Shown one piece after another: positions 23,401 to 52,344 of a DNA stretch of 64,000 nt. The notes beneath the pieces were generated by a model. It was not told the DNA's origin, did no database searches, and was given only the letters and a program-made list of their open reading frames with translations. This DNA comes from Macrostomum lignano (taxonomy: Eukaryota). The DNA lies in the NCBI GenBank assembly GCA_002269645.1, contig NIVC01002999.1, positions 62,001 through 126,000 of the forward strand, read 5' to 3'. A program made the translations under genes and the position numbers. Numbering within the stretch: the stretch's first letter is position 1; every line of letters starts with the position of its first letter.

Positions 23401-26400
23401 ATTGTGCAAATATTCTCCCAATCCGAACGTTGCTGATCGAGACGGCTATACGGCTTTGATGTACGCCGTGAAGTGCAGGAACTCCAGCTTGGTGAGGACT
23501 CTGCTGGAGTTGAAACCCGACCTGGAGATTGCTATCAACTTCTACGACGCGAGACGTGAGTGTTGCGTGCTGAGAATTCGGTTAAATATTATTAAGAATA
23601 AAATGAGTTCTAGCTAAAATACATGATATGCAGATAGGAGTCCATGGAGTACAGATAAGAGTCCATGGAATACTGATAAAGAATCCATAGAATACTGATA
23701 AGAATCCATGAGTACAGATAAGAGTCTATAGAATACTGATAAGAATCCATTGAGTACTGATAATAATCCATGGAATACTGATAAGAATCCATGGAATACT
23801 GATAAAGAATCCATGGAATACTGATAATAATCCAGTACTTATCCAGTAACTTGATAAGAATCCATAGAATACTGATAAGAATCCATGGAATACTGATAAG
23901 AATCCATGGAATACTGATAAGAATCCATGGAATACTGATAAGAATTCATGGAACACTGATAAGAATCCATGGAATACTGATAAGAATCCATGGAATACTG
24001 ATAAGAATCCATAGAATACTGATAAGAATCCATGGAATACTCATAAGAATCCATGGAATACTGATAATAATCCATAGAATACTGATAAGAATCCATAGAA
24101 TACTGATAAGAATCCATGGAATACTGATAATAATCCATAGAATACTGATAAGAATCCATGGAATACAGATAAGAATCCATAGAATACTGATAAGAATCCA
24201 TAGAATACTGATAAGAATCCATGGAATACTCATAAGAATCCATGGAATACTGATAATAATCCATAGAATACTGATAAGAATCCATAGAATACTGATAAGA
24301 ATCCATGGAATACTGATAATAATCCATAGAATACTGATAAGAATCCATGGAATACAGATAAGAATCCATAGAATACTGATAAGAATCCATGGAATACTGA
24401 TAAGAATCAATGGAATACTGATAAGAATCCACAGAATACTGATAAGAATCCATGGAATGCTGATAAGAATCCATGGAATACTGATAAGAATCCATGAGTA
24501 CAGATAAGAATCCATGGAATACTGATAATAATCCATAGAATACTGATAAGAATCCATAGAATACTGATAAGAATCCATGGAATACTGATAAGAATCCATA
24601 GAATACTGATAAGAATCCATGAGTACAGATAAGAATCCATAGAATACTGATAATAATCCATAGAATACTGATAAGAATCCATAGAATACTGATAAGAATC
24701 CATGGAATACTGATAAGAATCCATAGAATACTGATAATAATCCATGAGTACAGATAAGAATCCATGGAATACTGATAATAATCCATAGAATACTGATAAG
24801 AATCCATAGAATACTGATAAGAATCCATAGAATACTGATAAGAATCCATAGAATACTGATAATAATCCATAGAATACTGATAATAATCCATAGAATACTG
24901 ATAAGAATCCATAGAATACTGATAAGAATCCATGGAATACTGATAATAATCCATAGAATACTGATAAGAATCCATGGAATACTGATAAGAATCCATAGAA
25001 TACTGATAAGAATCCATAGAATACTGATAAGAATCCATAGAATACTGATAAGAATCCATGGAATACTGATAAGAATCCATAGAATACTGATAAGAATCCA
25101 TGGAATACTGATAAGAATCCATAGAATACTGATAAGAATCCATAGAATACTGATAAGAATCCATAGAATACTGATAAGAATCCATGGAATACTGATAAGA
25201 ATCCATAGAATACTGATAAGAATCCATGGAATACTGATAAGAATCAATGGAATACTGATAAGAATCCATGGAATACTGATAATAATCCATAGAATACTGA
25301 TAAGAATCCATGGAATACTGATAAGAATCCATGGAATACTGATAAGAATCAATGGAATACTGATAAGAATCCATAGAATACTGATAAGAATCCATAGAAT
25401 ACTGATAAGAATCCATGGAATACTGATAAGAATCCATAGAATACTGATAAGAATCCATAGAATACTGATAAGAATCCATAGAATACTGATAATAATCCAT
25501 AGAATACTGATAAGAATCCATGGAATACTGATAAGAATCCATGGAATACTGATAAGAATCCATGGAATACTGATAAGAATCCATAGAATACTGATAAGAA
25601 TCCATGGAATACTGATAAGATTCAATGGAATACTGATAAGAATCCATGGAATACTGAAAAGCGTCCATGGAATACTGATAAGAATCCATAGAATACTGAT
25701 AAGAATTCATGGAATACTGATAATAATCCATAGAATACTGATAAGAATCCATGGAATACTGATAAGAATCCATGGAATACTGATAAGAATCCATGGAATA
25801 CTGATAAGAATCCATGGAATACTGATAAGAATCCATGGAATACTGATAAGAATCCATGGAATACTGATAAGAATCCATAGAATACTGATAAGAATCCAGT
25901 ACTTATCCAGTAACTTGATAAGAATCCATAGAATACTGATAAGAATTCATGGAATACTGATAAGAATCCATAGAATACTGATAAGAATTCATGGAATACT
26001 GATAAGAATCCATAGAATACTGATAAGAATTCATGGAATACTGATAAGAATCCATAGAATACTGATAAGAATTCATGGAATACTGATAAGAATCCGTGGA
26101 ATACTGATAAGAATCCATGGAATACTGATAAGAATCCATGGAATACTGATAAGAATTCATGGAACACTGATAAGAATCCATGGAATACTGATAAGAATCC
26201 ATGGAATACTGATAAGAATCCATAGAATACTGATAAGAATCCATAGAATACTGATAAGAATCCATGGAATACTGATAAGAATCCATAGAATACTGATAAG
26301 AATTCATGGAACACTGATAAGAATCCATGGAATACTGATAAGAATCCATGGAATACTGATAAGAATCCATAGAATACTGATAAGAATCCATAGAATACTG

Positions 26401-29400
26401 ATAAGAATCCATGGAATACTGATAAGAATCCGTGGAATACTGATAAGAATCCATGGAATACTGATAAGAATCCATAGAATACTGATAAGAATTCATGGAA
26501 CACTGATAAGAATCCATGGAATACTGATAAGAATCCATGGAATACTGATAAGAATCCATAGAATACTGATAAGAATCCATAGAATACTGATAAGAATCCA
26601 TGGAATACTGATAAGAATCCAGTACTTATCCAGTACTTGATAAGAATCCATAGAATACTGATAAGAATCCATGGAATACTGATAAGAATCCATGGAATAC
26701 TGATAAAGAATCCATAGAATACTGATAAGAATCCAGTACTTATCCAGTACTTGATAAGAATCCATGGAATACTGATAAGAATCCATAGAATACTGATAAG
26801 AATCCATAGAATACTGATAAGAATCCATGGAATACTGATAAGAATCCATAGAATTCTGATAAGAATCCATAGAATACTGATAAGAATCCATGGAATACTG
26901 ATAAGAATCCATAGAATACTGATAAGAATCCATAGAATACTGATAAGAATCCATAGAATACTGATAAGAATTCATGGAATACTGATAAGAATCCATAGAA
27001 TACTGATAAGAATCCATAGAATACTGATAAGAATCCATAGAATACTGATAAGAATTCATGGAATACTGATAAGAATTCATGGAATACTGATAAGAATCCA
27101 TGGAATACATGGAATACTGATAAGAATTCATGGAATACAGATAAGAATTCATGGAATACAGATAATGGGAAAATTCTGCAACAAGCAGCCGCTCTGTTCT
27201 CACCGATCGTGCGCCATTCCATATGCAGGCAACAAGTACGCCAACTGCACTCCGCTGCAAATGGCCATCGGCAAGGGCCAGATGGAGATTGTCAAAATGC
27301 TATTGGATGCCGGTGCTAATTTGTTCGCTAATATGGACAGCATGGGTGAGTTTCGGTAAATTATTAATCCATAAGAAGATTCCTACTTCTTATTTGGTGT
27401 CTTGTCACTCCCAATTTCTGAATAGTGAACTGTTGCGTGTCTTGCCACTACCTGACTATATTGTCACTCTTTATCTGACTGTCTTGTCACTCTTTATCTG
27501 ACTGTCTTGTCACTCTTTATCTGACTATATTGTCACTCTTTATCTGACTATATTGTCACACTTTATCTGACTGTCTTGTCACTCTTTATCTGACTGTCTT
27601 GTCACTCTTTATCTGACTGTCTTGTCACTCTTTATCTGACTATATTGTCACTCTTTATCTGACTGTCTTGTCACTCTTTATCTGACTGTCTTGTCACTCT
27701 TTATCTGACTATATTGTCACTCTTTATCTGACTGTCTTGTCACTCTTTATCTGACTATATTGTCACTTTATCTGACTGTCTTGTCACTCTTTATCTGACT
27801 GTCTTGTCACTCTTTATCTGACTGTCTTGTCACTCTTTATCTGACTATATTGTCACTCTTTATCTGACTGTCTTGTCACTCTTTATCTGACTGTCTTGTC
27901 ACTCTTTATCTGACTATATTGTCACTCTTTATCTGACTGTCTTGTCACTCTTTATCTGACTATATTGTCACTTTATCTGACTGTCTTGTCACTCTTTATC
28001 TGACTGTCTTGTCACTCTTTATCAGACTGTCTTGTCACTCTTTATAGGCCCCGACCAGACCGAGTTCAGCGTCTCCTGCCTGCACACGGCCGTGGTGATG
28101 GACCACGCGGGCATCGGGCAGCTGCTGCTTGACCGCGGCGTCGATGTCAACGTGTGCACGTCGTCGGGCTTGACTCCGTTGCACTACGCAGCCAGCTGGG
28201 GTCACGACGCTTTCGCCAAGCTGCTGCTGAGCCGGGGCGCCACCGTGGACGCTGTCGGCGAACAGTTTATGGCTACGCCTTTGATCTATGCCGCCAGGCG
28301 GGACAAGCACACCACTATGCGGCTGCTGCTGGAGCACGGAGCAAATCCTAATCATCAGGATAAGCAGGTGAGATAATTGCACCTTGTGTGAGCGCTTGTG
28401 TATCAGTGCGTGCATATATAAGGTGGATATGGGGTAGTTTCACAGGTAGATATCAGGTAGTTTCACAGGTAGATATCAGATAGTTTCACGGGTAGATATC
28501 AGGTAGTTTCACGGGTAGATATCGGGTAGTTTCACAGGTAGATATCAGGTAGTTTCACGGGTAGATATCTGGTAGTTTCACAGGTAGATATCAGGTAGTT
28601 TCACGGGTAGATATCGGGTAGTTTCACAGGTAGATATCAGGTAGTTTCACAGGTAGATATCAGGTAGTTTAACGGGTAGATATCAGGTAGTTAGGCAGGT
28701 AGATATCGGGTAGTTAGGCAGGCAGATGTAGGGTAGTTTTGCAGGTAGTTTCACGGATTCAGTAGTCAGCTAGTTTTACAGATAGATGCACCATAAAAAA
28801 ACTATCAATGCAGGGTTACACAGCGCTTCACTGGTGTCTGACATTCAACCACGTGGACTCGTTAGACGTTTTGTTAAACTGCGGTCGCAAATTGGACGTC
28901 AATTTGATTAGTCAGAAAGTGGATCACAGACGCGGTGTCACTGCTCTGGTTCTGGGTCTGGAGTACTGCTCAGCTAAAGTGGTCGAACGCCTGTTGGAGA
29001 TGGGCTCAGACCCCAATGTGATCTTCGACGCCAATGAGATGACTTTGACGCCGATTTTCCTCTGCGCCGAGTTTGGATGCGTCGACAAATTGCAGCTGTT
29101 GATCAAGTATGGCGCCGACTTGAATAGGTGAGTTTGACCTTGCATACGTGGCTTGGAGTGACGGAATGATAAGCTAGTTCTCCCGGAGATAAAATAAATG
29201 GTGAGAATGACAAGATGAGTGATTCTGGAGTGAAAGGATAAGTGATGCTGGAGTGACAATATGAGTGATTCTGGAGTGAAAGGATAAGTGATGCTGGAGT
29301 GACAATATGAGTGATGCCGGAGTGAAAGGATAAGTGATGCTGGAGTGACAATATGAGTGATTCTGGAGTGAAAGGATAAGTGATGCTGGAGTGACAATAT

Positions 29401-32400
29401 GAGTGATGCCGGAGTGACAGGATGAGTGATGCCGGAGTGACAATATGAGTGATGCTGGAGTGAAAGGATGAGTGATGCCGGAGTGACAGGATGAGTGATG
29501 CCGGAGTGACAATATGAGTGATGCTGGAGTGAAAGGATGAGTGATGCCGGAGTGACAATATGAGTGATGCCGGAGTGGCAGAATGAGTGATGCCGGAGTG
29601 ACAATGAGTGATGCTGGAGTGACAGGATGAGTGATGCCGGAGTGACAATATGAGTGATTCTGGAGTGAAAGGATAAGTGATGCTGGAGTGACAATATGAG
29701 TGATTCTGGAGTGAAAGGATAAGTGATGCTGGAGTGACAATATGAGTGATGCCGGAGTGACAGGATGAGTGATGCCAGAGTGACAATGTGAGTGATGCTG
29801 GAGTGAAAGGATGAGTGATGCCGGAGTGACAATATGAGTGATGCCGGAGTGGCAGGATGAGTGATGCTGGAGTGACAGGATGAGTGATGCTGGAGTGACA
29901 GGATGAGTGATGCTGGAGTGACAGGATGAGTGATGCTGGAGTGACAGGATGAGTGATGCCGGAGTGACAATATGAGTGATGCCGGAGTGACAGGATGAGT
30001 GATGCCGGAGTGACAATATGAGTGATGCTGGAGTGACAGGATGAGTGATTCTGGAGTGAAAGGATGAGTGATGCCGGAGTGACAATATGAGTGATGCCGG
30101 AGTGACAATATGAGTGATGCCGGAGTGACAATATGAGTGATGCCGGAGTGACAATATGAGTGATGCCGGAGTGACAATATGAGTGATGCTGGAGTGACAG
30201 GATGAGTGATTCTGGAGTGAAAGGATGAGTGATGCCAGAGTAACAGAATGAGTGATGCCGGAGTGACAATATGAGTGATGCCAGATTGACAGGATGAGTG
30301 ATGCCGGAGTGACAATATGAGTGATGCCGGAGTGACAGGATGAGTGATGCCGGAGTGACAATATGAGTGATGCCGGAGTGACAGGATGAGTGATGCCGGA
30401 GTGACAATATGAGTGATGCCGGAGTGACAGGATGAGTGATGCCGGAGTGACAATATGAGTGATGCTGGAGTGACAGGATGAGTGATTCTGGAGTGAAAGG
30501 ATGAGTGATGCCGGAGTGACAGGATCACAGGAGTGACAGGATGAGTGATGCCGGAGTGACAGGATGAGTGATGCCGGAGTGACAATATGAGTGATGCCGG
30601 AGTGACAATATGAGTGATGCCGGAGTGACCGGATGAGTGATGCCGGAGTGACAATATGAGTGATGCCGGAGTGACAATATGAGTGATGCCGGAGTGACTA
30701 AATGAGTGATGCTCGAGTGACAAGATGAGTGATGCCGGAATGACTAAATGAGTGATGCTGGAGTGACAAGATGAGTGATGCCAAATTCACGGGATGAATA
30801 AAAGAGTGACAAGGTGAGGCAGTGAGTGAAAGGGAGACAGGATGAGTGACGAGAATGATCAGACGAGTGACAATGTCAGAGTGACAAACAACCACCCCCT
30901 CCTCGCAGAACGTCATCCCGCAAAGAGACGCCGTTACATTTCGCTTTGCGCTTCAAAAAAGTAGCGGCCGCCGAGCGTCTGATTCGAGCAGGTGCCGACC
31001 TGGAGACCCGGGCCAGCATCGGCAACGGCGAGCACCAGCAGGGTGTACACGTGGCCGCGCAGCTGGGCTTGAACAGCTGCATCCGCCTGCTGGCAGAGTA
31101 CGGCGCCAATGTCAATTCGACTATGACTTTGAAATGCGTCGAACGAGTGACGCCGTTGCATCTGGCGGCTTTGAACGACCTGTCGGAGACTGTCAAGATT
31201 CTTGTCATGCATGGTGCCGACGTTAATTGCCAGCGTAGTGACACCTTCACGCCTTTGTTAACTGCCGTGACCAAGTCTAACGTGTGCGCCGTCAAGTGTC
31301 TCGTTCGGGCTGGGGCCGACATTCACACTCGCTGCATTGTGTCCAGAAGCAAGGATGCCACCTGCCTGCACATCGCTGCCCAGGTAAGCTCACTGGCAGG
31401 TGGGGGGAGACAGGTTGACAGGTGAGAGTAGATATCAAGTAGATTGGCAGGTAGATATCGAGTATTTTGGCAGGTAGATATCGGGTAGTTTTGCAGGTAG
31501 ATATCGGTTAGTTTAGCAGGTAGATATCAGGTAGATATCAAGTAGTTTTGCAGGTAGATATCGGTTAGTTTTGCAGGTAGATATCGGGTAGTTTTGCAGG
31601 TAGATATCGGGTAGTTTTGCAGGTAGATATCAAGTAGTTTTGCAGGTAGATATCAAGTAGTTTTGCAGGTAGATATCGGGTAGTTTTGCAGGTAGATATC
31701 GGTTAGTTTTGCAGGTAGATATCGGGTAGTTTTGCAGGTAGATATCAAGTAGTTTTGCAGGTAGATATCAAGTAGTTTTGCAGGTAGATATCGGGTAGTT
31801 TCGTTTGCGTGCCTCAAGATTGGCAAAAAAACAATTGGCTTTCATTGCAGGTCGGGAGCCTGGAAATCGTTGACCTGCTGCTAGAGCGGGGCGCCAACCC
31901 ACTGGCCCGGATGGTCACCGGGGACCGAGCCGGCATCCTTCCAGTCCACCTGGCCTCGGAGACCGGCCATCTGGACGTTATTAAGCGCTTCCTCGACATC
32001 GGCGTAGACGTGAACGCGCAGGAGGACTGCGGCCTGACCTGCCTGCACTACGCGGCCAACGGTGGCAAGGCGGACATCATTAAACTGCTGCTTGAGAGGG
32101 GCGCCAGGGTGGATCTGAAGGCCGCCTATGATGACGGTGAGGCTTTTTTTGTTTGGTTTTGGTAAAACTGGTTTGTAGTATAATTATTACGGTATGGAGA
32201 GGATTAGGGTATGGAAGGGACTGAAGAGAGCGGTAGTATGATGGGGGAGAGCTGAAGTGTGATAGGGGAGAGCTGAAGTGTGATAGGGGAGAGCTGAAGT
32301 GTGATAGGGGAGAGCTGAAGTGTGATAGGCGAGAGTGGAAGTATGATGGGAGAGAGCGGAAGTATGATAGGGGAAAGCGAAAGTATGATGGGGGAGAGTG

Positions 32401-34625
32401 GAAGCGTGATTGATGAAGTCGTAAGCATGATATGGGAAAATCGGATTCATGATAGGGGAAAGCGAAAGTATGATGGGGGAGAGCGGAAGCGTGATTGATG
32501 AAGTCGTAAGCATGATATGGGAAAATCGGAATCATGATAGGGGAAAGCGAAAGTATGATGGGGGAGAGCGGAAGCGTGATTGATGAAGTCGTAAGCATGA
32601 TATGGAAAAATCGGAATCATGATAGGGGAAAGCGAAAGCATGATGGGGAAGGGCGGAAGCATGATTGGGGAGAGCGGAAGCATGATTGGGGAGAGCGGAA
32701 GCATGATGGGGGAGAGCGGAAGCATAGTAATCTGAATCTGATATGGAACAGAAAATGGCAGAGAGAAACAAAGACCTGCAACAAAGACACAAGGAGTGAA
32801 TTATCTCACCCGCTGTCTCACTCGCAGGCAATCGAGTCGACGTTCTGCCGCTGCACATGGCCTGCGAGAAGGGCAACGCCGAGTGCGCCCGCCTGCTGGT
32901 GGAGGCCGGCAGCCCTCTGGACGCCACCCTGTTCCGCAACAGACGCGGCAACATCACCCCACTGTACCTGGCCGTGGCGGAGAACAATCCCGAAGTTGTA
33001 TCCGTTCTGCTAGCTGCCGGCTCCGATGTCAACATTCAAGACGGCATCGGCGCCGCGCCGCTGCACATCTCCTGCCAGCGCGGCTATCACGACATCTTCT
33101 GCCAGCTGTTGTGCCATCCTAGCGTCAACGTGAACATCGCCACATTCAACGGCGTCACCCCTATCCATATCGTGTCGGAGAAGGGCCACTTCGACATGGC
33201 CATGTGGCTGATCGCTCGCGGAGTGAATGTTAATCCGTTGTGCCGGATTAAGGACGTGCACTCGGGCCAGATGTCTGAGGACATCATACCGTTGAATCAG
33301 GCGTGCGGTTTCGGCCATCTGCAGATTGTTAAACTGCTGTTGCAGGTTTGTGTTCAAGTCTTTGTTCTTTGTTGTTGACCCTTATCATTAGTCTCTGTAT
33401 TGTTTTGTTAGTTTAGTCTCTGTCAGGCTTTGTTCTGCAAGATTATTCTTTGTTGGTCTTCTTTTTTTCTAAAAGATTAGTCTCTATCAGTCTTTGTTCT
33501 ATATGATTGGTCTCTGTCAGTCTTTGTTCTGTAGTATTAGTCTCTATTAGTCTTTGTTCTGCGATATTAGTCCCTGTTAGTTTTTTTCTGTAATATTAGT
33601 CTTTGTCCCGAATCACCATCACCACCCCTCCCCAAACTCGAACGCGCAGAACGGCGCCGATGTGCACCACGGTGAGAATTTCGAAGGCCGCCGTGGCATC
33701 GCCAGCATTCATTGCGCCGCAATTCGCGGCCGGCATCACGTTATACCATTGCTGCGCAAGTTTGGCGCCAATTTGAATGCCACAGACGAGCAGGGCTGGA
33801 GCCCGCTGCACTGGGCTGTTCACGAGCGATTTTACGATACTGTGCTGCTGCTGCTGCAGAATGGCGCCGACCCCAGGCTGCTCAACCAGGTGAGTCTCAA
33901 GCCACACGACCGCCTTGGTTCGATTCCCACATGTGTGAGCCGCTGTGCACCCTGTGTGAGCCGCTGTGCACCCTGTGTGAGCCGCTGTGCACCCTGTGTG
34001 AGCCGCTGTACACCATGTGTGAGCCGCTGTGCACCCTGTGTGAGCCGCTGTACACCCTGTGTGAGCCGCTGTACACCCTGTGTGAGCCGCTGTGCACCCT
34101 GTGTGAGCCGCTTTGCACCCTGTGTGAGCCGCTGTACACCCTGTGTGAGCCGCTGTACACCCTGTGTGAGCCGCTGTGCACCCTGTGTGAGCCACTTTAC
34201 ACCCTGTGTGAGCCGCTGTACACCCTGTGTGAGCCGCTGTGCACCCTGTGTGAGCCGCTGTGCACCCTGTGTGAGCCGCTGTGCACCCTGTGTGAGCCGC
34301 TGTGCACCCTGTGTGAGCCGCTGTGCACCCTGTGTGAGCCGCTGTACACCCTGTGTGAGCCGCTGTGCACCCTGTGTGAGCCGCTGTGCACCCTGTGTGA
34401 GCCGCTGTGCACCCTGTGTGAGCCGCTGTGCACCCTGTGTGAGCCGCTGTGCACCCTGTGTGAGCCGCTGTGCACCCTGTAGTTGCCTCTAGCAATGATT
34501 TCTGTGTCATCACACAGGCTGGCCAACGGCCCATCCAGATGGCCACAACCAACGACATCACCTCCGTTCTGGAGCGGTTCGAAGCGCAACTGCTGAGCGA
34601 TGGTGAACCAATGTCAACAGAATGA
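20444..34625 (+). CDS. Large ankyrin-repeat protein (about 1260 aa, roughly 30 ANK repeats, no other domain seen), 10 coding exons
   Basis: join(20444-21181, 22889-23555, 27229-27345, 28048-28367, 28814-29127, 30909-31383, 31851-32136, 32828-33345, 33650-33889, 34518-34625). All introns are GT-AG, phases 0,1,1,0,2,0,1,0,0 are compatible, and the total is 3783 nt = 1260 aa plus TGA. Repeated GxTPLHxAA...LL..GAD motifs. The start could be ATG 20483 or an upstream exon. Confidence 0.9.
21360..22820. repeat. ANK intron 1: 21-bp minisatellite (GGAATCTATAGACTTCTGATT)n
   Basis: About 68 tandem units. Confidence 0.97.
23620..27165. repeat. ANK intron 2: 21-bp minisatellite (AGAATCCATRGAATACTGATA)n
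   Basis: About 165 tandem units. Confidence 0.97.
27445..28047. repeat. ANK intron 3: 23-bp minisatellite (CTGACTGTCTTGTCACTCTTTAT)n
   Basis: About 26 units; the last unit forms the acceptor CTTGTCACTCTTTATAG. Confidence 0.96.
28420..28760. repeat. ANK intron 4: 23-bp minisatellite (AGGTAGATATCAGGTAGTTTCAC)n
   Basis: About 14 units; same family as intron 6. Confidence 0.94.
29200..30880. repeat. ANK intron 5: 23-bp minisatellite (GAGTGATGCCGGAGTGACAATAT)n
   Basis: About 70 units. Confidence 0.96.
31420..31800. repeat. ANK intron 6: 23-bp minisatellite (GCAGGTAGATATCGGGTAGTTTT)n
   Basis: About 16 units. Confidence 0.95.
32190..32725. repeat. ANK intron 7: 21-bp based minisatellite (GGGGAGAGCTGAAGTGTGATA)n with higher-order variants
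   Basis: Tandem purine-rich units. Confidence 0.9.
33385..33605. repeat. ANK intron 8: degenerate ~30-bp repeat (TAGTCTCTGTCAGTCTTTGTTCTGTAATAT)n
   Basis: About 7 diverged units. Confidence 0.75.
33930..34480. repeat. ANK intron 9: 21-bp minisatellite (CTGTGTGAGCCGCTGTGCACC)n
   Basis: About 26 near-identical units. Confidence 0.97.
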
Positions 34626-37269: not shown

Positions 37270-39115
37270 TTCTAAATCACACTTGAGAATCATTTCTGAA
37301 TCACACTTGATAATCGTTTCTGAATCACACTTGGGAATCATTTCTGAATCACACTTGAGAATCATTTCTGAATCACACTTGATAATCCGTTTCTGAATCA
37401 CACTTGAGAATCATTTCTGAATCACACTTGGGAATCGTTTCTGAATCACACCTGGGAATCGTTACTAAATCACACTTGAGAATCATTTCTAAATCACACT
37501 TGAGAATCATTTCTGTATCACACTTGAGAATCATTTCTGAATCACACTTGAGAATCATTTATGTATCACACCTGAGAATCATTTCTGAATCACACCTGAG
37601 AATCATTTCTAAATCACACTTGAGAATCATTTCTGAATCACACTTGGGAATCATTTCTGAATCACACCTGAGAATCATTTCTGAATCACACTTGAGAATC
37701 ATTTCTAAATCACACTTGAGAATCATTTCTAAATCACACTTGGGAATCATTTCTGAATCACACTTGAGAATCATTTCTGTATCACACTTGAAAATCATTT
37801 CTGTATCACACTTGAGAATCATTTCTGTATCACACTTGAGAATCATTTATGTATCACACCTGAGAATCATTTTTGAATCACACTTGGGAATCATTTCTGA
37901 ATGACACTTAAGAATCATTTCTGAATCACACTTAAGAATCATTTCTGTATCACACTTGGGAATCATTTCTGAATCACACTTGAGAATCATTTCTGTATCA
38001 CGCTTGAGAATCATTTCTGTATCACACTTGAGAATCATTTCTAAATCACACCTGAGAATCATTTCTGAATCACACTTGAGAATCATTTCTAAATCACACT
38101 TGGGAATCATTTCTGAGTCACACTTGAGAATCATTTCTGTATCACACTTGAGAATCATTTCTGTATCACACTTGAGAATCATTTCTGTATCACACTTGAG
38201 AATCATTTCTGTATCACACTTGAGAATCATTTCTGTATCACACTTGAGAATCATTTCTGTATCACACTTGAGAATCATTTCTGTATCACACTTGACAATC
38301 ATTTATGTATCACACCTGAGAATCATTTCTGAATCACACTTGGGAATCATATCTGAATGACACTTAAGAATCATTTCTGTATCACACTTGAGAATCATTT
38401 CTGTATCACACTTGAGAATCATTTCTGTATCACACTTGGGAATCATTTCTGAATCACACTTGGGAATCATTTCTGAATCACACTTGAGAATCATTTCTGA
38501 ATCACACTTGGGAATCATTTCTGAATCACACTTGAGAATCATTTCTGAATTACACTTGAGAATCATTTCTGAATCATACTTGGGAATCATTTCTGAATCA
38601 CACTTGAGAATCATTTCTGAATTACACTTAAGAATCATTTCTGAATTACACTTAAGAATCATTTCTGAATCACACTTAAGAATCATTTATGTATCACACT
38701 TGAGAATCGTTTCTGAATCACACTTAAGAATCATTTCTGAATCACACTTAAGAATCATTTATGTATCACACTTGAGAATCGTTTCTGAATCACACTTAAG
38801 AATCATTTCTGAATCACACTTAAGAATCATTTCTGAATCACACTTAAGAATCATTTCTGAATCACACTTGAGAATCATTTCTGAATCACACTTGGGAATC
38901 GTTTCTGAATCACACTTAAGAATCATTTATGTATCACGCTTGATAATCGTTTCTGAATCACACTTAAGAATCATTTCTGAATCACACTTGAGAATCATTT
39001 CTGAATCATACTTGAGAATCATTTCTGAATCACACTTGAGAATCATTTCTGAATGACACTTGAGAATCATTTCTGAATGACACTTGGGAATCATTTCTGA
39101 ATCACACTTGATAAT
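37270..39115. repeat. 24-bp minisatellite (TCACACTTGAGAATCATTTCTGAA)n
   Basis: About 76 units. Confidence 0.97.
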
Positions 39116-39689
39116 CGGTTGTAAACTGAGAATTGGCTAAATTTGTATCCGCGAAGGCACAGTTGAGTCAAGAATCTGCTGACGCCAAAAATATTGATCC
39201 GCAGGTGTTTCCGCGTTACTAAAATTAGATGCCAAGCAGCAGAGGCCCCTACAACGCAGGGCTTATGGGTCCTGCAACTGACTTCTGACGCTTTTAGACC
39301 GTCGAGCGCTTGCTAGCTGACTGCATCCCATCCCGCTGAAACACACCCCCCCATTTCAGCCTTGTTGGCTATTGAATATAATGTGAAACCCTCATCATTC
39401 CGGGGAGCTGCAGATGACAGATAAAGGAGGCTTCAATTAATCAGCCGCTATAGTATAGATTTGGAGCAAGAGTTATTTTATATATACGTATATTTGTCAG
39501 CGCTCAGTTAGATGACAAACAGCCAGCAAGCTACGGTAGACCAGAGTTAAATGGCAGTTTTTTCTACAGTCGCAGCCTAGCGCAGGTAGCAATGCTGCTG
39601 CTATGCAGGCATTGCTAGATGAGTTTTGTTCCTCTTTTAACTTCTGCGTGGCTCAGGCCGTAGGGCAGGGCTACGGGCCATTGTTTCAA

Positions 39690-39975
39690 CCGCTGACGTG
39701 AGCTGCATGGCTTGGCGACTCCATCACAAGGGGTGCTGGACAGAAAATCTGGACTGGGGGACTACGTTCTATCGATTGGAAAACATAGGATCACATGCCC
39801 ATTCCGCTCACACGGGGTGTACAAGCAGCGGCCCCCTGACTTCTCATCATCAGAGAAGACACGCACAGACAAACTCTGCCTTGGTGGTTTGGCCCTCATA
39901 GACGTGAATCGGGAGTCGAGCCCGGGCCTCCGGTGGAGCGAGAGTCGGACGCGATAACCCGCTGAGCCCAGTGCT
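39690..39975 (-). mobile_element. tRNA-derived SINE
   Basis: The minus strand begins GCACTGGGCTCAGCGGG (A-box-like) ... GGGCTCGACTCCC (B-box-like, 39911-39922), followed by a ~210-bp body. The 3' limit is approximate. Confidence 0.55.
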
Positions 39976-40533
39976 AGACTTGGTTGCTTTCCAATCCAGA
40001 TTAGACAATTATTAGAAGTCCATGACTCCACAGTGACTGATGACGTCTGCTAATAGTCTTAATAAAGCACAGGGCCTGTCGGGAGCGCCAGCATTAACCC
40101 GCTGCCAACCCCAACCCCGCACCCTCGCCGTTGCCAGGCGGTAGCGAAGTCAACAAGCCCGCAGGGTAGTGGACTCCCTCCTCTCACCCTCCACCTTCCC
40201 TTCTCTCATCCCTGTCCCTGCTGCCTGGTTGGCTACTAAAAATTAGAGAAAGAAAAATCCTTAGTCGCAAGAGCAGCGCTTTCGCACTAGACTAAAAACG
40301 GGCATTGTCCGGGACGCAAAGCAGAAATCCTCAAAAATAATCGGGATCCCAAAGAGTCCTTCGATTTTGAGACATCATCAATCTCAACTTGATTAAGGTT
40401 CAGAGTGAACGTCAGGGGTAAGTACGGCTAGGATTTCTCTGATTGATGACTTAGACCTGCCTATCAGCTTAAAACTATTTAGTTCGGAATTGTCTTCGTT
40501 GAAATTCCACAGACAAGCATTCGAATTGCAACA

Positions 40534-41609
40534 ATGGTGGCTACTGAGAAGCTCATCTTCGTCTGCCTTCTGGTCATGGCGTCTCTCGCTGCTGCTGAGG
40601 TGAGCTGACACTTGGCAAGCGTTTAGGTGAGGGGGGGGCGGTTCGACTTTGACGGTGCTGTAGTGTCTTGAGCCCTGACATTGGCCACTGAACCAGCCCT
40701 GACAATGGCCACTGAACCAGCCCTGACATTGGCCACTGAACCAGCCCTGACATTGGCCACTGAACCAGCCCTGACTATGGCCACTGAACCAGCCCTGACT
40801 ATGGCCACTGAACCAGCCCTGACAATGGCCACTGAACCAGCCATTACAATGGCCATAAAATTGCTGTCGCTTTTCCAGAAACTGGAATCGCCCGAGATAG
40901 AAGAGGAGGTTAAGGCTGTAGACAGGCAGCGTCACAGGCACCATGGTCACCACCGCGAAGGCGCTCTGCCATCGAGCCGCCACCGCAGCCCCCACGGGCA
41001 TCATGCTAAGCACGGACGGCACCACCACGCCAAGCACGGGTCCAACGTTGACAGACGAGCCGCCCTAGCCGACTTCAAACGCGCCGCCCTTTCGGACTTC
41101 AAACGTGCCGCCTTAGCCGACTTCAAACGTGCCGCCCTTTCGGACTTCAAACGCGCCGCCTTAGCCGACTTCAAACGTGCCGCCCTTTCGGACTTCAAAC
41201 GTGCCGCCCTCTCGGACTTCAAACGCGCCGCCCTAGCCGACTTCAAACGTGCCGCCCTTTCGGACTTCAAACGCGCCTCCCTCTCGGACTTCAAACGCGC
41301 CGCCCTAGCCGACTTCAAGCGCACGCCCGGGCACCGCAAGCAGCACCACAGTCAGGCCAGCGAGAGCAGGATGTCGCACAACAAAACCAAGTCCCAGGTA
41401 AGTAGCACCAAAAAAGGTTGAAAAAATCAATTTTACGCATATAACTGTCTGTGTATAGAACGGTCCTCTATTTAATTCAATTGATCATCATCCTGCAGTC
41501 TCACCACCCGAGAGACAGCAGCGGCAAGCGGTCCTACTACTGGGACGTCTGCAGCCACTGGATCAACGGTCGGGAGCGCCTCTACGTGTGCAAAAAGCAG
41601 ATCCGTTAA
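40534..41609 (+). CDS. Secreted multi-copy neuropeptide/prohormone-type precursor (231 aa)
   Basis: join(40534-40599, 40879-41397, 41499-41609), all phase 0 GT-AG; probable 5'UTR exon ending 40417 (intron 40418-40512). Signal peptide MVATEKLIFVCLLVMASLAAA, His-rich segment, RR then 11 x hexapeptide-KR, then GKR-SYYWDVCSHWINGRERLYVCKKQIR. Confidence 0.88.
40672..40855. repeat. 24-bp intronic minisatellite (GGCCACTGAACCAGCCCTGACATT)n in the prohormone gene
   Basis: About 7.5 units inside intron 40600-40878. Confidence 0.92.
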
Positions 41610-42719
41610 AGTTTGAAGACTGACTGACTCAAGCGACTGTTTAGAGATAGATTACTGTGAGAGTTGACGGAGACAGGTGAGAGTTGGTTGAGAAGGCTAA
41701 ATATAGTGTAAAAACAAGTTTATTATCGAAATTATAATTCCCGTCATGTGCTTAAACTATAATCTTCAAAATCATAGAGCCGGTTTGGCAACTAACAATT
41801 TTTTTTATTATTATCTTCTCACATAATATTGTGACTCAGTTTTCTTTTAGCTCGTAATTGTGACTTTCTGTTGTTTTATTTTAATCGGAATCATCGCTTG
41901 GCGAGCGTCACTTGTTCACTTGTGTCCAATATTAACCTCGAAAAATGTTTTGTCTTGTTTGAATTTTTAAGGAATATTAATCTGCTTTTTATAAGCACAA
42001 AGAAAGCTGTTTGTTAATTATAAATTTTTTCTGCAAATATGCCGGTTGAAGGTAATAATATTATTTATTCAAACACCTTTTTTTCGCCATCAATATAATC
42101 AAATCCGAAAGTTTGCTTTTGGTAAATCTTTTCTGTTTAACTAACTCGTCACTAAAACTTCTCTTCTTAATACACTTAATAAAAATGACCGACGTGAGTC
42201 TGCACCAGGACTCAATTAACCGAATCGCATTGGTCCCAAAAATGCAAAATTTCATCAAGGTGTTGCTTTTATTGATTATTGATCGGATGGTGATGTCTTC
42301 AATTAATCTCAAGTCAAATCTCCACTTCCGATTTTAGAGATCTTTAAAACAGATTTCCAAGAGATCATCTTCAGCAGTTTAATTTAACCAATTTATTTAA
42401 TTTAATCTTTAATTAATTGTAAGTTTGCTTTAACAAAGTCCATTTGCATTGTCTTTCTACTTTGCCAATTGTTGCTAGCGCACTAGAATTGGGATTATTA
42501 AAAAGACAAAAATGACTCCCCGACGTCTGTCTTTACTTTCTCTATTCATCCACTCTGTCTCGCTGCTTTTTGGCTTCTAAAACAAAATAGAAGGTGAGGA
42601 CCGCATGACTGACTACTTGGGGATGAAGGGGATTCGATCCGCATGAATGATGTAGATTGTACCAGCGTATACCACCAGTTCTGATGACTGCAGCAGTCTC
42701 GGGTTTTTCAACCCCCACG

Positions 42720-43370
42720 GCATCAATCGATTTGATCAATCAATAGTCGCATCAATCGATTTGATCAATCAATAGTCGCATCAATCGATTTGATCAATCA
42801 ATAGTCGCATCAATCGATTTGATCAATCAATAGTCGCATCAATCGATTTGATCAATCAATAGTCGCATCAATCGATTTGATCAATCAATAGTCGCATCAA
42901 TCGATTTGATCAATCAATAGTCGCATCAATCGATTTGATCAATCAATAGTCGCATCAATCGATTTATCAATCAATAATCGCATCAATCGATTTGATCAAT
43001 CAATAATCGCATCAATCGATTTGATCAATCAATAATCGCATCAATCGATTAATCAATCAATAATCGCATCAATCGATTTGATCAATCAATAATCGCATCA
43101 ATCGATTTGATCAATCAATAATCGCATCAATCGATTAATCAATCAATAATCGCATCAATCGATTTGATCAATCAATAATCGCATCAATCGATTTGATCAA
43201 TCAATAATCGCATCAATCGATTTGATCAATCAATAATCGCATCAATCGATTTGATCAATCAATAATCGCATTAATCGATCTGATCAATCAATAATCGCAT
43301 CAATCGATTTGATCAATCAATAATCGCATCAATCGATTTAATCAATCAATAGTCGCACCAATCGATTAAT
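42720..43370. repeat. 29-bp minisatellite (ATCAATCGATTTGATCAATCAATAGTCGC)n
   Basis: About 22 units, each containing the palindromes ATCGAT and TTGATCAA. Confidence 0.96.
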
Positions 43371-46662: not shown

Positions 46663-48398
46663 CTAAGATTGGTCGCCGCGCACTTTGTCTCTGGCCGTAG
46701 TTGAAGTCGATCCGCCGCCGGCAACGGCTCTGTCCGCATCGGCACCAATCGAAGCGTTCATCGCTTCCAATTCGTCATAGAGAAAGCTTCTCAACCGGAG
46801 CAGGTACTGCGGAAACAGTTCAATATCGTTGTGGCCGGCGCCTTCAACCCACAGCGGGTCAACTGAGCGGGGCAGGCGCTCATAGATGGCCAGCCCGTGC
46901 GCGATGTTGATCACTTCGTCTTCTGTGCCGTGGATCACCAGGCAGGGAGAGTGGATTCTTGGCGCCTTCTCGATGCTGACGGCAACAAAATAGGGCGGGT
47001 TCGTTGAGGGTGGGATGGTCGATCTGTGCTTGAGGGCTTTTAAGCAGAAACAAGTTTATTTTCTGGAATTTAGCCATAGTGCTGAAGACAGACCCTGAAG
47101 CCACAGCCTCTGAAGCCACAGCCCCTGAAGCCATTTCCTCTGAAGCCACAGCCCCTGAAGCCACAGCCCCCTCAAGCAATTTCCCCTGAAGCCACAGTCC
47201 CCTGAAGCCACAGTCCCCTGAAGCCACAGTCCCCTGAAGCCACAGTCCCCTGAAGCCACAGTCCCCTGAAGCCACAGTCCCCTAAAGCCACAGTCAGGGC
47301 CACAGTCCCCTGAAGCCACAGCCACCTGAAGCCACGGTCCTCTGAAGCCACAGTCCCCTGAAGCCACAGCCCCCTGAAGCCATTTCCCCTGAAGCCACAG
47401 TCCCCTAAAGCCACAGTCAGGGCCACAGTCCCCTGAAGCCACAGTCCCCTGAAGCCACAGTCCCCTGAAGCCACAGTCAGGGCCACAGTCCCCTGAAGCC
47501 ACAGTCCCCTGAACCACATTTCCTGAAGCCACATCCCCTAAAGCCACGCCCCTTGAGGCCACATTTCCTGAAGCCACATCTCCTGAAGCCACAGCCCCTG
47601 AAAAACGGCCAAAGCAGCTCACTTGGGAAAGGCATCGAAGAACCATGTCCGGCTGGTGTCCGGAAAAGCCACCCTCAGTCCGGACAGCAGCGGGCTGTGC
47701 AGCACAACTCCTGCAGGGTTGACCCGGGTGGCCAAATCCACAGTTGGCACTGTGCCAATGGACTGGCCATAGAGTACAATCTCTCCTGGGGACAGATTGT
47801 ACCTGCCAATCAACTGTTGCCAGGCGCAGTCAATATCGGCGTACAGATTCTTCTCGAGCGGCTGGCCAGTGCTGGCCCCGTAGCCTGAGTAGTCGTAGCT
47901 GAACACATTCATATTGAGTTTACGGCCGAGATCAATGAGAAAGCCGCTCATTTGGCCCAGATCCACCGCGTTACCATGGGAAAAGAGCAGAGTGTACTTT
48001 GATCCTTTTCTAGAACGTACGGTACGAATCAGTACGCAAGCGATTGTGCTGCCTCTAGCCGTGTTGGCGGTGAAAGCTTCCAGACAGTCGGCCTCGTCCT
48101 CTGTGAGCTGCATCGCTGGCGGGGCGGCGGCCGGATCTTCCATGTCTGGCGGATTAATCTGGAATCTGGGACTGTGCATGTCGCCAACTAGCGAGTAGGT
48201 CGGCCTGGGCGGCAGGAAGGCCAACTTGGCGGCGATGCGCGACGGTAACGGCGGCCAGCAGAACAGGCGGCAGAGGTCGCGGCAGGTCATGGAGGCGCCG
48301 CCGCCGCCGCGCGCCCCGGCGCCTTCATCCTCGTGAGGCGCGTACTGACCGGCGGCCGCTGACGGCGCCGCTCCGTGGTGACGTTGGCGACTGGACAT
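46663..48398 (-). CDS. ABHD17: ABHD17-family alpha/beta-hydrolase (protein depalmitoylase), paralog A, 362 aa
   Basis: join(48398-47623, 46975-46663), phase 2 GT-AG. N-terminal Cys cluster [39 protein letters not shown], catalytic GQSIG, HGTEDE and GAGHNDIE. Confidence 0.95.
47090..47600. repeat. 16-bp minisatellite (GAAGCCACAGTCCCCT)n in the ABHD17-A intron
   Basis: About 30 units. Confidence 0.93.
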
Positions 48399-48419
48399 GG
48401 AAGGCTAGCGGAGTCGAGA

Positions 48420-48880
48420 TAGGTTAAGGTTGGGTCAAGGTAGGTCAAGGTGGGTCAAGGTAGGTCAAGGTGGGTCAAGGTAGGTCAAAGTAGGTCAAGG
48501 TAGGTCAAGGTGGGTCAAGGTAGATCAAGGTGTGTCAAGGTGGGTCAAGGTGGGTCAAGATAGATCAAGATGGATCAAGGTGGGTCAAGTGGGTCAAGGT
48601 AGATCAATGTGGGTTAAGATAGGTCAAGATGGGTCAAGGTAGATCAATGTGGGTCAAGATAGGTCAAGGTGGATCAAGGTGGGTCAAGTGGGTCAAGGTA
48701 GATCAATGTGGGTCAAGATAGGTCAAGATGGGTCAAGGTAGATCAATGTGGGTCAAGATAGGTCAAGGTGGGTCAAGGTAGGTGAAAATGGGTCAGAATA
48801 GGTCAATATGACTAAAATAGGTCAAGATACGTAAATATGGGTCAAGTTGTGTCAGTGTGAGTCAGAATGGGTCAAAGGCA
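48420..48880. repeat. 10-bp minisatellite (GGTCAAGGTR)n, probably in a 5'UTR intron of ABHD17-A
   Basis: About 40 units; on the minus strand followed by acceptor-like CTCCGCTAG just 6 nt before the ATG. Confidence 0.88.
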
Positions 48881-49936
48881 CAGCCGGTGGATTAGTTTAA
48901 AATCGAATAGAAGACCTCCACGTCCTCAGTTGATGGTGCAGTTGCGCCCGACCTCAACCTAGCCGCTGGGTGTGCGCATGCAAAAACCGAGATGAAATCG
49001 ATTTAATTGCAAAATCTACCTACCATAAATTTTGTACTTTGAAAAGTTAAAATTGACACAGAATTAAAGAAATGATTTACAACTTGTCCAATAAGTAAAT
49101 TTAACTGTATCCAAATGATTATTTAAAAGAATATCTATTGAAATATTCAGAAAAAATAGTTTTAAAGTCTAACAGACTGGCGCTCGCTTGACTAATAGTT
49201 ACGAGAGTATTGTGTGTGTAACAAGTTAATTGACAACAGATTTTTAAATACAAAACAACAACACTGCTTATTCCCTGCTACGAGTCTATAAATGTCATAT
49301 AATGGGTAAAACCAAAAGAAAAATATGAAATGTAGTTCGCATTCCAAGGAATCAATAAGATTGAATGCAGAAACCAGAGAGACATGATGTGTGTGTACAG
49401 AGCATATTTACAAGGGAATGCCTATTCAATATTAATTCGAGATTTTTTCCAAAATTTGTTTAAAAGAAAGCTCTAAAACAGTAAAAAAACAACTTTTAAC
49501 GAATACTCTCAGTACTTTTAGAATAAACATATTTTAATAAAAAACTCTGGACTTTATAACCATCTACAAATTATAATTTTAATATTTAATAATCATAGAA
49601 ATTTTTCTTCACAGTAAAATAGTACCAATATAGAAGACGTGTGCGAACTTAAAATTAAAAGTACATAACAACTTTTAACTTAAGTACGCGTATACTTATC
49701 AAGTACATGTGTACTACTTTAAAACAAAAAGTACACGTCACAGTTCGTTACAAAAGTACACAAGCACAGAAATAATATTGGACACAGATTCAAGTGCAAA
49801 TAGTACAATTATATACAGGAACCAATTCGCCTTGAAAATCTGTACATAATTAGTTAATTAAAATAAATATTACAATACTTGAACAAGACAAATGCTTCAA
49901 ACAAGTGAATTGGTAACAGGCAATTCAGTACTTAAA

Positions 49937-52344
49937 TTAAATTAAGCCTCTATGCTCGCAATCCACAGCTACATCACCGTTTCCAATGTCTCCTCGACTG
50001 CCGTTGTCTCCAGTCTGCTTCTGGGCATCCCGCTGCTGTTGCTCCTGCTGCTTCTGCAAATGGTCCAATTCTCTATGTAGAAATAAGCGCAGCCGCTCCA
50101 GGTACTGCGGGAACAGTTCGATATCGTTGTGCCCGGCGCCTTCGATCCACAGCGGCTCAACAGCCGGCTGCGGCAGCCGCTCGTGAAGGGCGAGGCCGTG
50201 AGCAAAATCAATCACCTCGTCCTCGGTGCCGTGAATGATGAGGCAGGGCGAACGGATTCTGGGCGCCTTCTCGATACTGCGGGCCGATTGTGAAAGTTTT
50301 AGTTAGTACACGTGCACTTTAAGTTCAAGTACTTTTAGTTCATATGTACTTCTAAATAAAAGTACACGCGCAATTTTTAAGCCAGAATTTGCACATTGAT
50401 CTACACGGTGCAAAGTTTTATTGATTATAGCATGTCACTGCCAAGGACAGCGAATTACTGTCTAAATCTAGGACACTATAACTACAAACTTCGCCCGTAA
50501 CTATGATGAACAAAGAAAGACCATACGCTCGTATATAAGATAGCGAAAGCGGCTTCAGTGAGGCGTCTTTGATCTTGCCTTCTAAGCCCAGTTATTAAGC
50601 GGAAAGAGCTGTCTAGCTAGATTATAGGCATAGAGAAGACGGCTAACAAGTATGATGAATTTAAAATGACATGCAGACTTGCAAAGTGCACTACATACGA
50701 CTGTTTAAAAAAACTTATATCGGATAGCAGTCTGATCCGTGATAATCCACTATACTAAAAATGCTTTGTCACATTACACAAGCAAGATAAGCCTGAACAA
50801 GGGGTGAGAGAGAACATTAAAAATGCGTTTTAACACTGCAATTTAAGGACACGTACAGACCCTGAAGCCACATCATCTAAAGCCACAGCCCCCGAAACCA
50901 CATCCCCTGAAGCCACAGCAACTGAAACCACCCACGGCCCTGAGCCACAGCTCCTGAAGCTACAGCAACTGAAAGCCGCAGCACCTGAATCCACATCCCC
51001 TGAAGCCACATCCCTGAAGCCACATCCCCTGAAGCCACACACGGCCCTGAGGCACATCCCCTGAAGCCACAGCCCCTGCAGCCACAGCCGCTGAAGCCAC
51101 AGCCCCCGAAACCACATCCCTTCAAGCCACAGCCCCTGAACCACATCACTTGAAGCCACATCCCCTGAAGCCGCAGCCCTTGAAAGTCGCAGCACCTGAA
51201 GCCACACCCCTGAAGCCACACCCCTGAAGCCACAGCAGCTGAAGCCACAGCAGCTGAAGCCACAGCCCCCGAAACCACATCCCTTCAAGCCACATCCCCT
51301 ATCCCCTGAAGCCACAGCCTTTGAAAGCCGCAGCACCTGAAGCCACACCCCTGAAGCCACAGCCCCCGCAACCACATTCCTTCAAGCCACATCCCCTGAA
51401 GCCACAGCCCCCGAAACCACATCCCTTCAAGCCACATCCCCTAAAGCCACATTCCCTGAACCACATCCCTTGAAGCCACATCCCCTGAAGCCACAGCCCT
51501 TGAAAGCCGCAGCACCTGAAGCCACACCCCTGAAGCCACAGCAGCTGAAGTCACATCCCCTGAAGCCATAGTCCCCTGAAGCCACAGTCCCCTGAAGCCA
51601 CAGCAGCTGAAGCCATATCCCTTCAAGCCACAGCCCCTGAACAACGGCCAGAGCAGCTCACTTGGGAAAGGCATCGAAGAACCATGTCCGGCTGGTGTCC
51701 GGAAAAGCCACCCTCAGTCCGGACAGCAGCGGGCTGTGCAGCACAATTCCTGCAGGGTTGACCCGGGTGGCCAAATCCATAGTTGGCACTGTGCCAATGG
51801 ACTGGCCATAGAGTACAATCTCTCTTGGGGACAGATTGTACCTGCCAATCAACTGTTGCCAGGCGCAGTCAATATCGGCATACAGATTCTTCTCGAGCGG
51901 CCGGCCAGTGCTGGCCCCGTAGCCTGAGTAGTCGTAGCTGAACACGTTCATATTGATCCGTCTAGCCAGGCCAATTAAAAAGCTACTAATCTGACCCAAA
52001 TCCACGGCGTTACCGTGAGAGAAGAGCAGGGTGTACTTTGACCTGGCGTGCGCCCCGGCGCTAACCATCATACAAGCTATTGTGCTGCCATTCGCTGTGG
52101 TGGCCAGAAATGCGTCTAGAAATCGGGATTTATCCTCGTTGGAGAATTGGAACTCGGCTCGGTCGCTCAGGTGCAATTGAAAGGCAGGCGAGGCGACCCC
52201 GTGACGATCTGCTGCCGAGGCAGTTGCGCCAGCGCTGGCCACAAGAGAATAAGTTGGCTCGGGCGGCAGGAAGGCCAATTTAGCGGCAATGCGGGATGGC
52301 AAAGGCGGCCAGCAGAACAGGCAGCAGAGATCCGCGCAAGACAT
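49937..52344 (-). CDS. ABHD17: ABHD17-family depalmitoylase, paralog B, 340 aa
   Basis: join(52344-51662, 50276-49937), same intron position and phase as paralog [26 protein letters not shown] and GAGHNDIE are intact. Confidence 0.95.
50860..51640. repeat. 16-bp-based minisatellite (GAAGCCACA[T/G]CCCCT)n in the ABHD17-B intron, same family as in paralog A
   Basis: Tandem units with higher-order variants. Confidence 0.92.

Follow-up and report, generated by a model that had tools for sequence, protein, structure and literature searches.

We describe here a gene of the flatworm Macrostomum lignano located in a stretch of 64,000 nucleotides (assembly GCA_002269645.1, contig NIVC01002999.1, positions 62,001 to 126,000 of the forward strand; hereafter the window, in whose coordinates all positions are given). 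The locus, on the forward strand at 40534-41609, is a real, transcribed gene (BOX15_Mlig019341g1) that encodes a secretory multi-copy precursor with eleven tandem hexapeptides of the type AAL[AS]DF. In the reading that we favour as the most probable overall, the product is a multi-copy precursor of prohormone type that represents the AxxxDF family in flatworms for the first time, and its hexapeptides would be released as secreted signals. AxxxDF is a recently named spiralian neuropeptide type that has so far been reported only from nemertean and brachiopod transcriptomes, in animals for which genetic tools are scarce. Its occurrence in M. lignano would extend the type to Platyhelminthes, implying that it is either convergent or older, with subsequent losses in planarians and neodermatans, and this species offers established methods of RNA interference, transgenesis and in situ hybridization with which the function of the peptides and their receptor could be worked out.

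Gene structure and transcript support

Assembly of the exons from the window sequence resulted in a coding sequence (CDS) of 696 nt, corresponding to a protein of 231 aa, in which the three exons encode 22, 173, and 36 aa and both introns show GT..AG borders in phase 0. Coding exon 1 (40534..40599) comprises the ATG at position 40534 and the signal peptide MVATEKLIFVCLLVMASLAAAE, and is followed by the phase-0 donor GTGAGC of intron 1 (40600..40878, 279 nt). This intron contains an unrelated minisatellite of 7.7 copies of 24 bp (40671-40855), owing to which the raw track of open reading frames (ORFs) ran on into exon 2; when intron 1 is retained, the frame meets a TGA two codons in. Exon 2 (40879-41397) encodes an N-terminal propeptide of 58 residues (40879..41052), made up of an acidic stretch, KLESPEIEEEVKAVD, and a His-rich basic spacer (RHRHHGHH...HGRHHHAKHG). 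It continues with the repeat segment (41053..41322), formed by RR (41053-41058) and 11 tandem units of 24 nt, each encoding one hexapeptide plus KR (41059-41322), and with a basic His/Ser-rich linker, TPGHRKQHHSQASESRMSHNKTKSQ (41323..41397), ahead of the phase-0 donor GTAAGT of intron 2 (41398..41498, 101 nt). Exon 3 starts with the end of the linker, SHHPRDSS, and the residues G-K-R (41499..41531), a potential site of amidation and cleavage as judged from sequence, and finishes with the C-terminal peptide of 25 aa, SYYWDVCSHWINGRERLYVCKKQIR, and the stop codon (41532..41609, with TAA at 41607-41609); the peptide has a C-x12-C spacing and an internal KK.

The spliced product was found to be the GenBank hypothetical protein BOX15_Mlig019341g1 (P0002), with 100% identity over 100% of the length, which bears out the proposal, made in an initial annotation from the DNA letters, of a spliced gene not captured whole by the ORF track. 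The GenBank annotation of this assembly was built from RNA-seq data and transcript assemblies only, by means of StringTie/TACO, mapped de novo transcripts, and TransDecoder (Wudarski et al. 2017). Since the exon boundaries agree exactly with this RNA-derived annotation, they constitute evidence for a spliced mRNA. Just before the ATG, in the segment 40418-40512, a possible intron of the 5′-untranslated region or a trans-splice acceptor was observed, with the junction CAGGG/GTAAGT at 40418 and the sequence TTCCACAG ending at 40512. Trans-splicing is frequent among M. lignano mRNAs (Wudarski et al. 2017).

Architecture of the precursor

The N-terminus of the protein (MVATEK) leads into a hydrophobic core, LIFVCLLVMASLAAA, at residues 6-20 and a cleavage site AAA/E, judged by hydropathy and the −3/−1 rule, and the signal peptide initially proposed was thus confirmed. 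The spacer that follows had been described as acidic; this holds for its first ~16 residues, and the spacer as a whole is His-rich and basic (24% His, isoelectric point (pI) 9.5). The mature protein is likewise strongly basic and His-rich (pI 10.7, 10% His).

The RR and the eleven KR-delimited hexapeptides behind it were recovered with exactly the positions and counts initially given: AALADF five times (units 1, 3, 5, 8, and 11), AALSDF five times (units 2, 4, 6, 7, and 9), and ASLSDF once (unit 10), so that 11 of 11 units read A-[AS]-L-[AS]-D-F. KR follows every one of the units and Gly precedes KR in none (0/11), which leaves them with no amidation signal. The predicted free hexapeptides are acidic, with a pI of ~4 and average masses of 606.7 Da (AALADF), 622.7 Da (AALSDF), and 638.7 Da (ASLSDF). 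The C-terminal tail has the plan KR, six residues, C-x12-C, and then K-K, and its two cysteines presumably form a disulphide bond. A Pfam search of the protein matched no family, and Rfam and tRNA scans of the window revealed no RNA genes.

Probable relationship to the AxxxDF family

Relatives of the precursor were sought by an exhaustive phmmer search over 1.84 billion proteins, which resulted in 206 matches. Nearly all of them corresponded to unrelated low-complexity repeats of 8 residues that outscored the true relatives, and for this reason the E-values were set aside and the matches were screened instead by architecture, that is, for a signal peptide together with KR-delimited short repeats. 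This screen revealed the protein XP_064647831 of the nemertean Lineus longissimus, in which KR or KK flanks each of ten ASWLDF units, and three unassigned precursors with ASW[AS]DM (P0061 and P0109) or A[LRT][IL]NDF (P0074) peptides. The A/S alternation at position 4 of the M. lignano hexapeptides is also present in P0061 and P0109. When the protein, the family alignment, and the paralogue described below were used as queries in word-indexed searches, only M. lignano and nemertean entries were detected.

The Lineus protein belongs to a described type. Thiel, Yanez-Guerra, Franz-Wachtel, Hejnol & Jekely (Thiel et al. 2021, MBE 38:4847; PMC8557429) compiled a curated list of proneuropeptides that includes a section 'AxxxDF', named 'ASWLDF' in the preprint of that work, with entries from nemerteans (ASWLDF, ASWLDM, ATWHDF, ATWLDF, and ASWIDT) and brachiopods (AKFNDF, AKFFDF, AKFVDF, and AKVNDF). 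The listed peptides are flanked by KR or KK, non-amidated, and present in multiple copies. In addition, the spacer peptides GNTGDLKPWLEN and GNDNPMDPETIKVI were identified by mass spectrometry (MS) in larvae of L. longissimus (PMC8557429), and therefore the dibasic sites bracketing ASWLDF are cut and trimmed in vivo in Lineus.

The M. lignano gene shares with this family a signal peptide and many copies of a non-amidated peptide of 6 residues with A1, D5, and F6; position 6 is Met or Thr in some family members, and KR or KK flanks every copy. Back-to-back copies without spacers are a further feature in common with the brachiopod and the unassigned forms. Reconstruction of the XP_064647831 gene (L003) indicated exons encoding 29, 212, and 27 aa separated by two phase-0 introns, with the signal peptide plus 6 aa in exon 1, all repeats in exon 2, and a 27-residue tail in exon 3. 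Three coding exons, phase-0 introns, and the confinement of all repeats to exon 2 are therefore shared by the two genes, a match of moderate weight, given how often a phase-0 intron follows the signal peptide. Altogether, a match to a named prohormone, which the initial annotation had set as grounds for refutation, is present at least in motif, architecture, and gene structure, and its inference of an undescribed signalling system was not supported. Its suggestion of an orphan receptor stands, as none is known for the AxxxDF family; the situation is the same in the family and in the M. lignano gene with regard to both receptor and function.

The unassigned precursors with AxxxD[F/M]-type peptides suggest that the family may be wider than reported. 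They were found in environmental or run assemblies: L005 1168-1479 (Logan SRR22388065), L006 153-518 (JGI 3300030743), and P0074/P0154 (ENA). All are small secreted precursors, P0109/P0061 with the KR-delimited peptides ASWADM/ASWSDM and P0074 with ALINDF/ARLNDF/ATLNDF. L005 looks genomic and contains the whole precursor within one exon. On a metagenome contig, L004 1198-1869 (JGI 3300040954), we found exon 2 of an ASWLDF gene of the nemertean type, starting with VNGDR... and ending with ...VIRE, exactly at the two intron positions of L. longissimus.

We consider that the AAL[AS]DF precursor probably belongs to the AxxxDF family by common descent, although this is not proven: the case rests on a short motif and the architecture, because nothing outside the hexapeptide aligns and positions 2-4 differ. 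Several observations weigh against this assignment. MAFFT aligned only the repeat units of the M. lignano protein with those of nemertean and brachiopod precursors, with no similarity beyond the hexapeptide and unrelated tails; the phmmer matches to Lineus were equally confined to the repeat region, and the E-values for these repeat proteins are uninformative. Positions 2-4 read A-L-[A/S] in M. lignano and S-W-L or K-F-N in the family, and the spacers are His-rich and basic, whereas those of the nemertean and brachiopod precursors, and of most proneuropeptides, are acidic. The hexapeptide ASWLDF itself is not among the Lineus MS matches consulted, which include only its flanking spacer peptides (PMC8557429). 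Finally, the sequences of the planarian and schistosome prohormone catalogue (Collins et al. 2010) contained no 'DFK' or 'DFR' string, and the Platynereis proneuropeptide (pNP) set contained no multi-copy DFKR or DMKR precursor, so that AxxxDF would have to be patchily retained.

These observations also bear on the alternative that survives best, according to which the precursor is a genuine multi-copy one invented in Macrostomum or in flatworms, its match to AxxxDF at A1, D5, and F6 being due to chance or convergence. The Cys-loop tail, absent from nemertean and brachiopod precursors, speaks in its favour, as do the classification of AxxxDF among lineage-restricted innovations (Thiel et al.; PMC8557429) and a metagenome scan for the flatworm form, in which 175 pattern matches to DFKRAALA-encoding loci yielded 0 confirmed ones. 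On the other hand, the coincidence extends to six independent features (a length of 6, A1, D5, F6, the missing amidation signal, and KR to either side), three exons with phase-0 introns are found in the Lineus gene as well, bridging forms such as ASW[AS]DM exist with A/S alternation at position 4, and every taxon in question is a spiralian. The nemertean and brachiopod members also share little with each other outside the motif. We regard an independent invention as a rather unlikely explanation; were it true, the 'new family' of the initial annotation would be right in the phylogenetic sense. In the favoured reading, the uninterrupted tandem copies, the His-rich spacers, and the C-terminal Cys-loop are lineage-specific features of the M. 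lignano gene; the C-x12-C peptide differs from the nemertean tail, which is Cys-free and helical.

Regarding the literature, flatworms are not mentioned for AxxxDF in Thiel et al. 2021 (PMC8557429), and a paper on schistosome cercarial peptides showed no xDF peptides. In a string search of the literature AALADF had no matches, and the M. lignano gene identifiers were absent from the searchable text. The string AALSDF was found only inside the Aplysia peptide SYADSKDEESNAALSDFA, from an achatin-like precursor, a single embedded occurrence that is probably coincidental. The peptide (SdYADSKDEESNAALSDFA) contains a D-amino acid and derives from a spiralian neuropeptide precursor whose peptides isomerise between L and D at residue 2. 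The Platynereis 'WLD' pNP was likewise discarded, as its peptides are of the unrelated WLDNSQFKDED type. Within the literature checked, the M. lignano gene would thus be the first AxxxDF-type precursor of a flatworm.

Predicted processing and nature of the product

The protein displays the generic features of prohormones processed by PC1/3 and PC2 (signal peptide, repeated dibasic sites, conserved short peptides, and a convertase in the organism), its cleavage being a prediction. The initial view of a secreted, dibasic-rich, multi-copy precursor of prohormone type is supported by the signal peptide, the RR/KR array, and the selection on the units described below. The PC2 homologue of M. lignano, RNA815_2403.2, is an essential gene with expression in the nervous system (Arbore et al. 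2015). According to the route that we propose, the signal peptide would direct the precursor into the endoplasmic reticulum and the secretory pathway, and the precursor would then be sorted to regulated secretory granules, where the His-rich segments could, speculatively, aid pH- or metal-dependent condensation. A PC2-type convertase would cut after each RR or KR and an enzyme of the carboxypeptidase E type would strip the basic residues, resulting in the release of five AALADF, five AALSDF, and one ASLSDF as free-acid peptides. Predicted by-products include the His-rich N-terminal propeptide, a linker peptide possibly ending in Ser-amide (...PRDSS-G-K-R), and the disulphide-looped C-terminal 25-mer, or a 20-mer if KK were cut. 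The hexapeptides would most likely be secreted signals, most plausibly acting on a G protein-coupled receptor.

A different nature of the product can be envisaged, in that the gene might encode a non-neuronal secretory product, such as a secretion of glands (prostate or seminal, adhesive, pharyngeal, or epidermal) or a His-rich protein with antimicrobial or metal-binding activity; in one variant of this proposal the repeats would work as parts of the uncleaved protein, in another the released peptides would have their effect outside the animal, as pheromones or in seminal manipulation. The basic, His-rich composition of the mature protein, atypical for proneuropeptides, would be consistent with it, and the Ala-rich 8-residue repeat could be helical. 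Nevertheless, KR was kept after every unit in two diverged paralogues while the spacers drifted, as expected of released peptides and not of a structural repeat; the precursor of the matching family is processed at these sites in Lineus larvae; and in other spiralians precursors of the whitnin and AxxxDF types are regarded as neuronal. Taken together with its variants, we judge this proposal improbable, clearly more so than an independent invention, and maintain the view of hexapeptides released as signals.

Selection on the tandem array, second copy and paralogue

The coding array was scored 354-423 by Tandem Repeats Finder (TRF), in a window crowded with tandem arrays of 15-35 bp (46 TRF rows with score >= 250). 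Other minisatellites detected by TRF were located at 3967-6111, 21371-22819, 23633-27165, 29208-30782, 37270-39116, 40671-40855, 42720-43367, and 61569-62532, and several minisatellites of the window give long spurious ORFs on both strands. The array at 37270-39116 (77 copies of 24 bp, ~1.8 kb) sits 1.4 kb upstream of the gene; neither this array nor the one in intron 1, also of 24 bp, resembles the coding 24-nt repeat in sequence. Since short tandem arrays are so common in the window, the periodicity of the coding array by itself means little.

The coding array lies in frame within an RNA-supported CDS. Comparison among its 11 units revealed a ratio of nonsynonymous to synonymous differences (pN/pS) of 0.15, with zero changes at second codon positions. 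A1, L3, D5, F6, K7, and R8 are invariant, that is, 6 of the 8 codons never change amino acid, and these residues vary synonymously (four codons for Leu, two for Arg, and two for Lys); the sole replacements are Ala/Ser at positions 2 and 4. Because the differences between units are mostly synonymous, every KR is kept, and a diverged paralogue keeps the same hexapeptides, these comparisons indicate that the hexapeptides and their KR sites are under purifying selection. Where peptides and cleavage sites are conserved beside drifting spacers, the sequence bears the classical signature of a precursor yielding excised peptides.

A second genomic copy of the gene was found on contig NIVC01002566.1 (L002, 10001-11075), with 98.9% identity across the gene segment in comparison with window positions 39308-41965 and a CDS differing by a single synonymous change. 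Colinearity between this contig and the window extends over window positions of about 31 to 52 kb, and such a near-identical copy is expected, as the DV1 genome is partly duplicated (Wudarski et al. 2017). The protein annotated for the second copy, BOX15_Mlig008925g1 (P0001, 207 aa), contains 8 units, whereas its DNA encodes 11; the model omits 72 nt of the array, which points to a transcript-derived model with a collapsed repeat or an allele.

The diverged paralogue (P0010) is embedded at residues ~73-262 of UniProt A0A1I8IA06, a fused model of 900 aa named 'Inhibitor_I29 domain-containing protein', and was not found in the GenBank annotation of M. lignano. It has a different signal peptide of its own, MNCALQVCLLLGLLVSVTSA, and different spacers, which are still His-rich although their sequence is not kept. 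Its 10 KR-delimited units (AALADF, AALSDF, and ASLADF) comprise one isolated AALADF and nine tandem units. The tail, QLYWDICTRMENGEEK, conserves with that of the window gene the pattern KR-x-YWD[VI]C..NG.E. Older UniProt models of the window gene from the ML2 assembly (P0004, P0005, and P0011, including A0A1I8IZF9 and A0A1I8FKU2) are frame-shifted or fused: the frame-shifted ones read the repeat as ...TSNVPP..., and one is fused to the upstream ankyrin gene. These models are unfit as evidence of protein diversity. As a gain for annotation, names can now be given to two 'hypothetical proteins' and three broken UniProt models.

That the array might be a minisatellite lying by chance in an open frame, or an annotation artefact, as the many 15-35 bp arrays of the window, two others of 24 bp within 4 kb of the gene among them (37270-39116 and 40671-40855), could suggest, is effectively refuted by the RNA-derived gene model, the synonymous bias of the variation among units, the second genomic copy, and the conservation of the units in the diverged paralogue.

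Genomic neighbourhood

Upstream of the peptide gene, on the forward strand, lies a large ankyrin-repeat gene (~20444-34492), and downstream, on the reverse strand, an alpha/beta-hydrolase gene (~47093-52200); the order ankyrin gene, peptide gene, hydrolase gene also holds in the second copy. An uninterrupted ORF of 1198 aa on the forward strand (13-3609), with reverse transcriptase, RNase H, and integrase domains, corresponds to the pol gene of a long terminal repeat (LTR) retrotransposon and runs off the left end of the window, and a C-terminal fragment of a hAT transposase is present at 17211-18194 (forward strand).

Comparison with other spiralian precursors

Molluscs, annelids, and nemerteans have precursors of the achatin type (GF[AGF]D), which also contain short acidic non-amidated peptides in multiple KR-delimited copies. 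Unlike the M. lignano hexapeptides, these are tetrapeptides that begin with Gly, have an aromatic residue at position 2, and end in Asp. In nemerteans, achatin and AxxxDF are carried as separate precursors.

A second resemblance concerns the whitnin/SPTR/PKYMDT precursors of molluscs and annelids. Like the M. lignano gene, they combine a signal peptide with a non-amidated hexapeptide whose last two residues are Asp and a small or aromatic one, and they have a C-terminal loop peptide after KR. In this general plan, 5-6 residues precede Cys1, the loop has 12-13 residues, position −2 from Cys2 is aromatic, and the second residue past Cys2 is basic. The C-terminal peptide of whitnin is disulphide-bonded, and in Haliotis it has been detected by MS as MYMGICMRQSHNHFIPYPCMRS-amide; the cysteines are spaced C-x12-C in Haliotis and chiton, as against C-x13-C in Platynereis. 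In the whitnin of the latter (...KER-ATWLDT-R-DLGDLEDQFKEL...KR-GRFQGFCFRRTRSGRFLPYICWKG...), ATWLDT occupies the place of mollusc PKYMDT (chiton sequence), a peptide proposed by Veenstra as a proctolin homologue. ATWLDT differs by one residue from the nemertean peptides ATWLDF and ASWLDT.

The tail of the M. lignano protein shares N+5, G+6, K/R+7, R+9, F/Y+11, and F/V+12 with the chiton peptide. In a shuffle test of the Cys-loop with the cysteines fixed, the similarity was marginal (p = 0.056 with chiton, 0.064 with Haliotis, and 0.027 combined), in comparison with p = 0.00026 for a genuine whitnin pair. A three-sequence whitnin profile compared by hhalign with the M. lignano tail aligned KR/C/GR/Y/C/K over 31 columns (P = 0.0043, with a probability of only 8%), and the same profile compared with nemertean AxxxDF tails gave only a 4-column match of TWLD with SWLD that was not significant. 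There are also clear differences. Whitnin has one copy of the hexapeptide, ending in Thr, vs eleven copies ending in Phe in M. lignano, and it is directly followed by R and a conserved helical spacer (ATWLDT-R-DL(G)DLEDQFKEL or PKYMDT-R-DLEDAFKSL); this 'RDLED-FK-L' spacer is absent from the M. lignano gene, where xxxxDF-KR repeats are found instead. Planarians have no recognisable whitnin (Conzelmann et al.), and no whitnin category appears among the nemertean, brachiopod, and phoronid precursors of Thiel et al. (PMC8557429).

We advance only tentatively, as a doubtful proposition, that the whitnin/PKYMDT precursor may have a divergent orthologue in flatworms, namely the M. lignano gene, with the hexapeptide amplified eleven-fold and the Cys-loop peptide kept. 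As part of this proposition, a chain of peptide similarity would lead from mollusc PKYMDT through annelid ATWLDT and nemertean ATWLDF/ASWLDT/ASWLDF to flatworm AAL[AS]DF. If true, it would join the 'lineage-specific' AxxxDF family to whitnin and make AxxxD[F/T] hexapeptides candidate ligands of the orphan spiralian orthologues of the proctolin receptor; the ligand of this receptor is stated to be unknown by Thiel et al. (PMC8557429), who also report that PKYMDT has not been found in other lophotrochozoans. The occurrence of AxxxDF-type hexapeptides together with a whitnin-like tail in a single precursor, in a host phylum not earlier reported for AxxxDF, thus provides a testable hypothesis on two questions raised by Thiel et al., namely the origin of AxxxDF and the activator of the orphan spiralian receptor of proctolin type.

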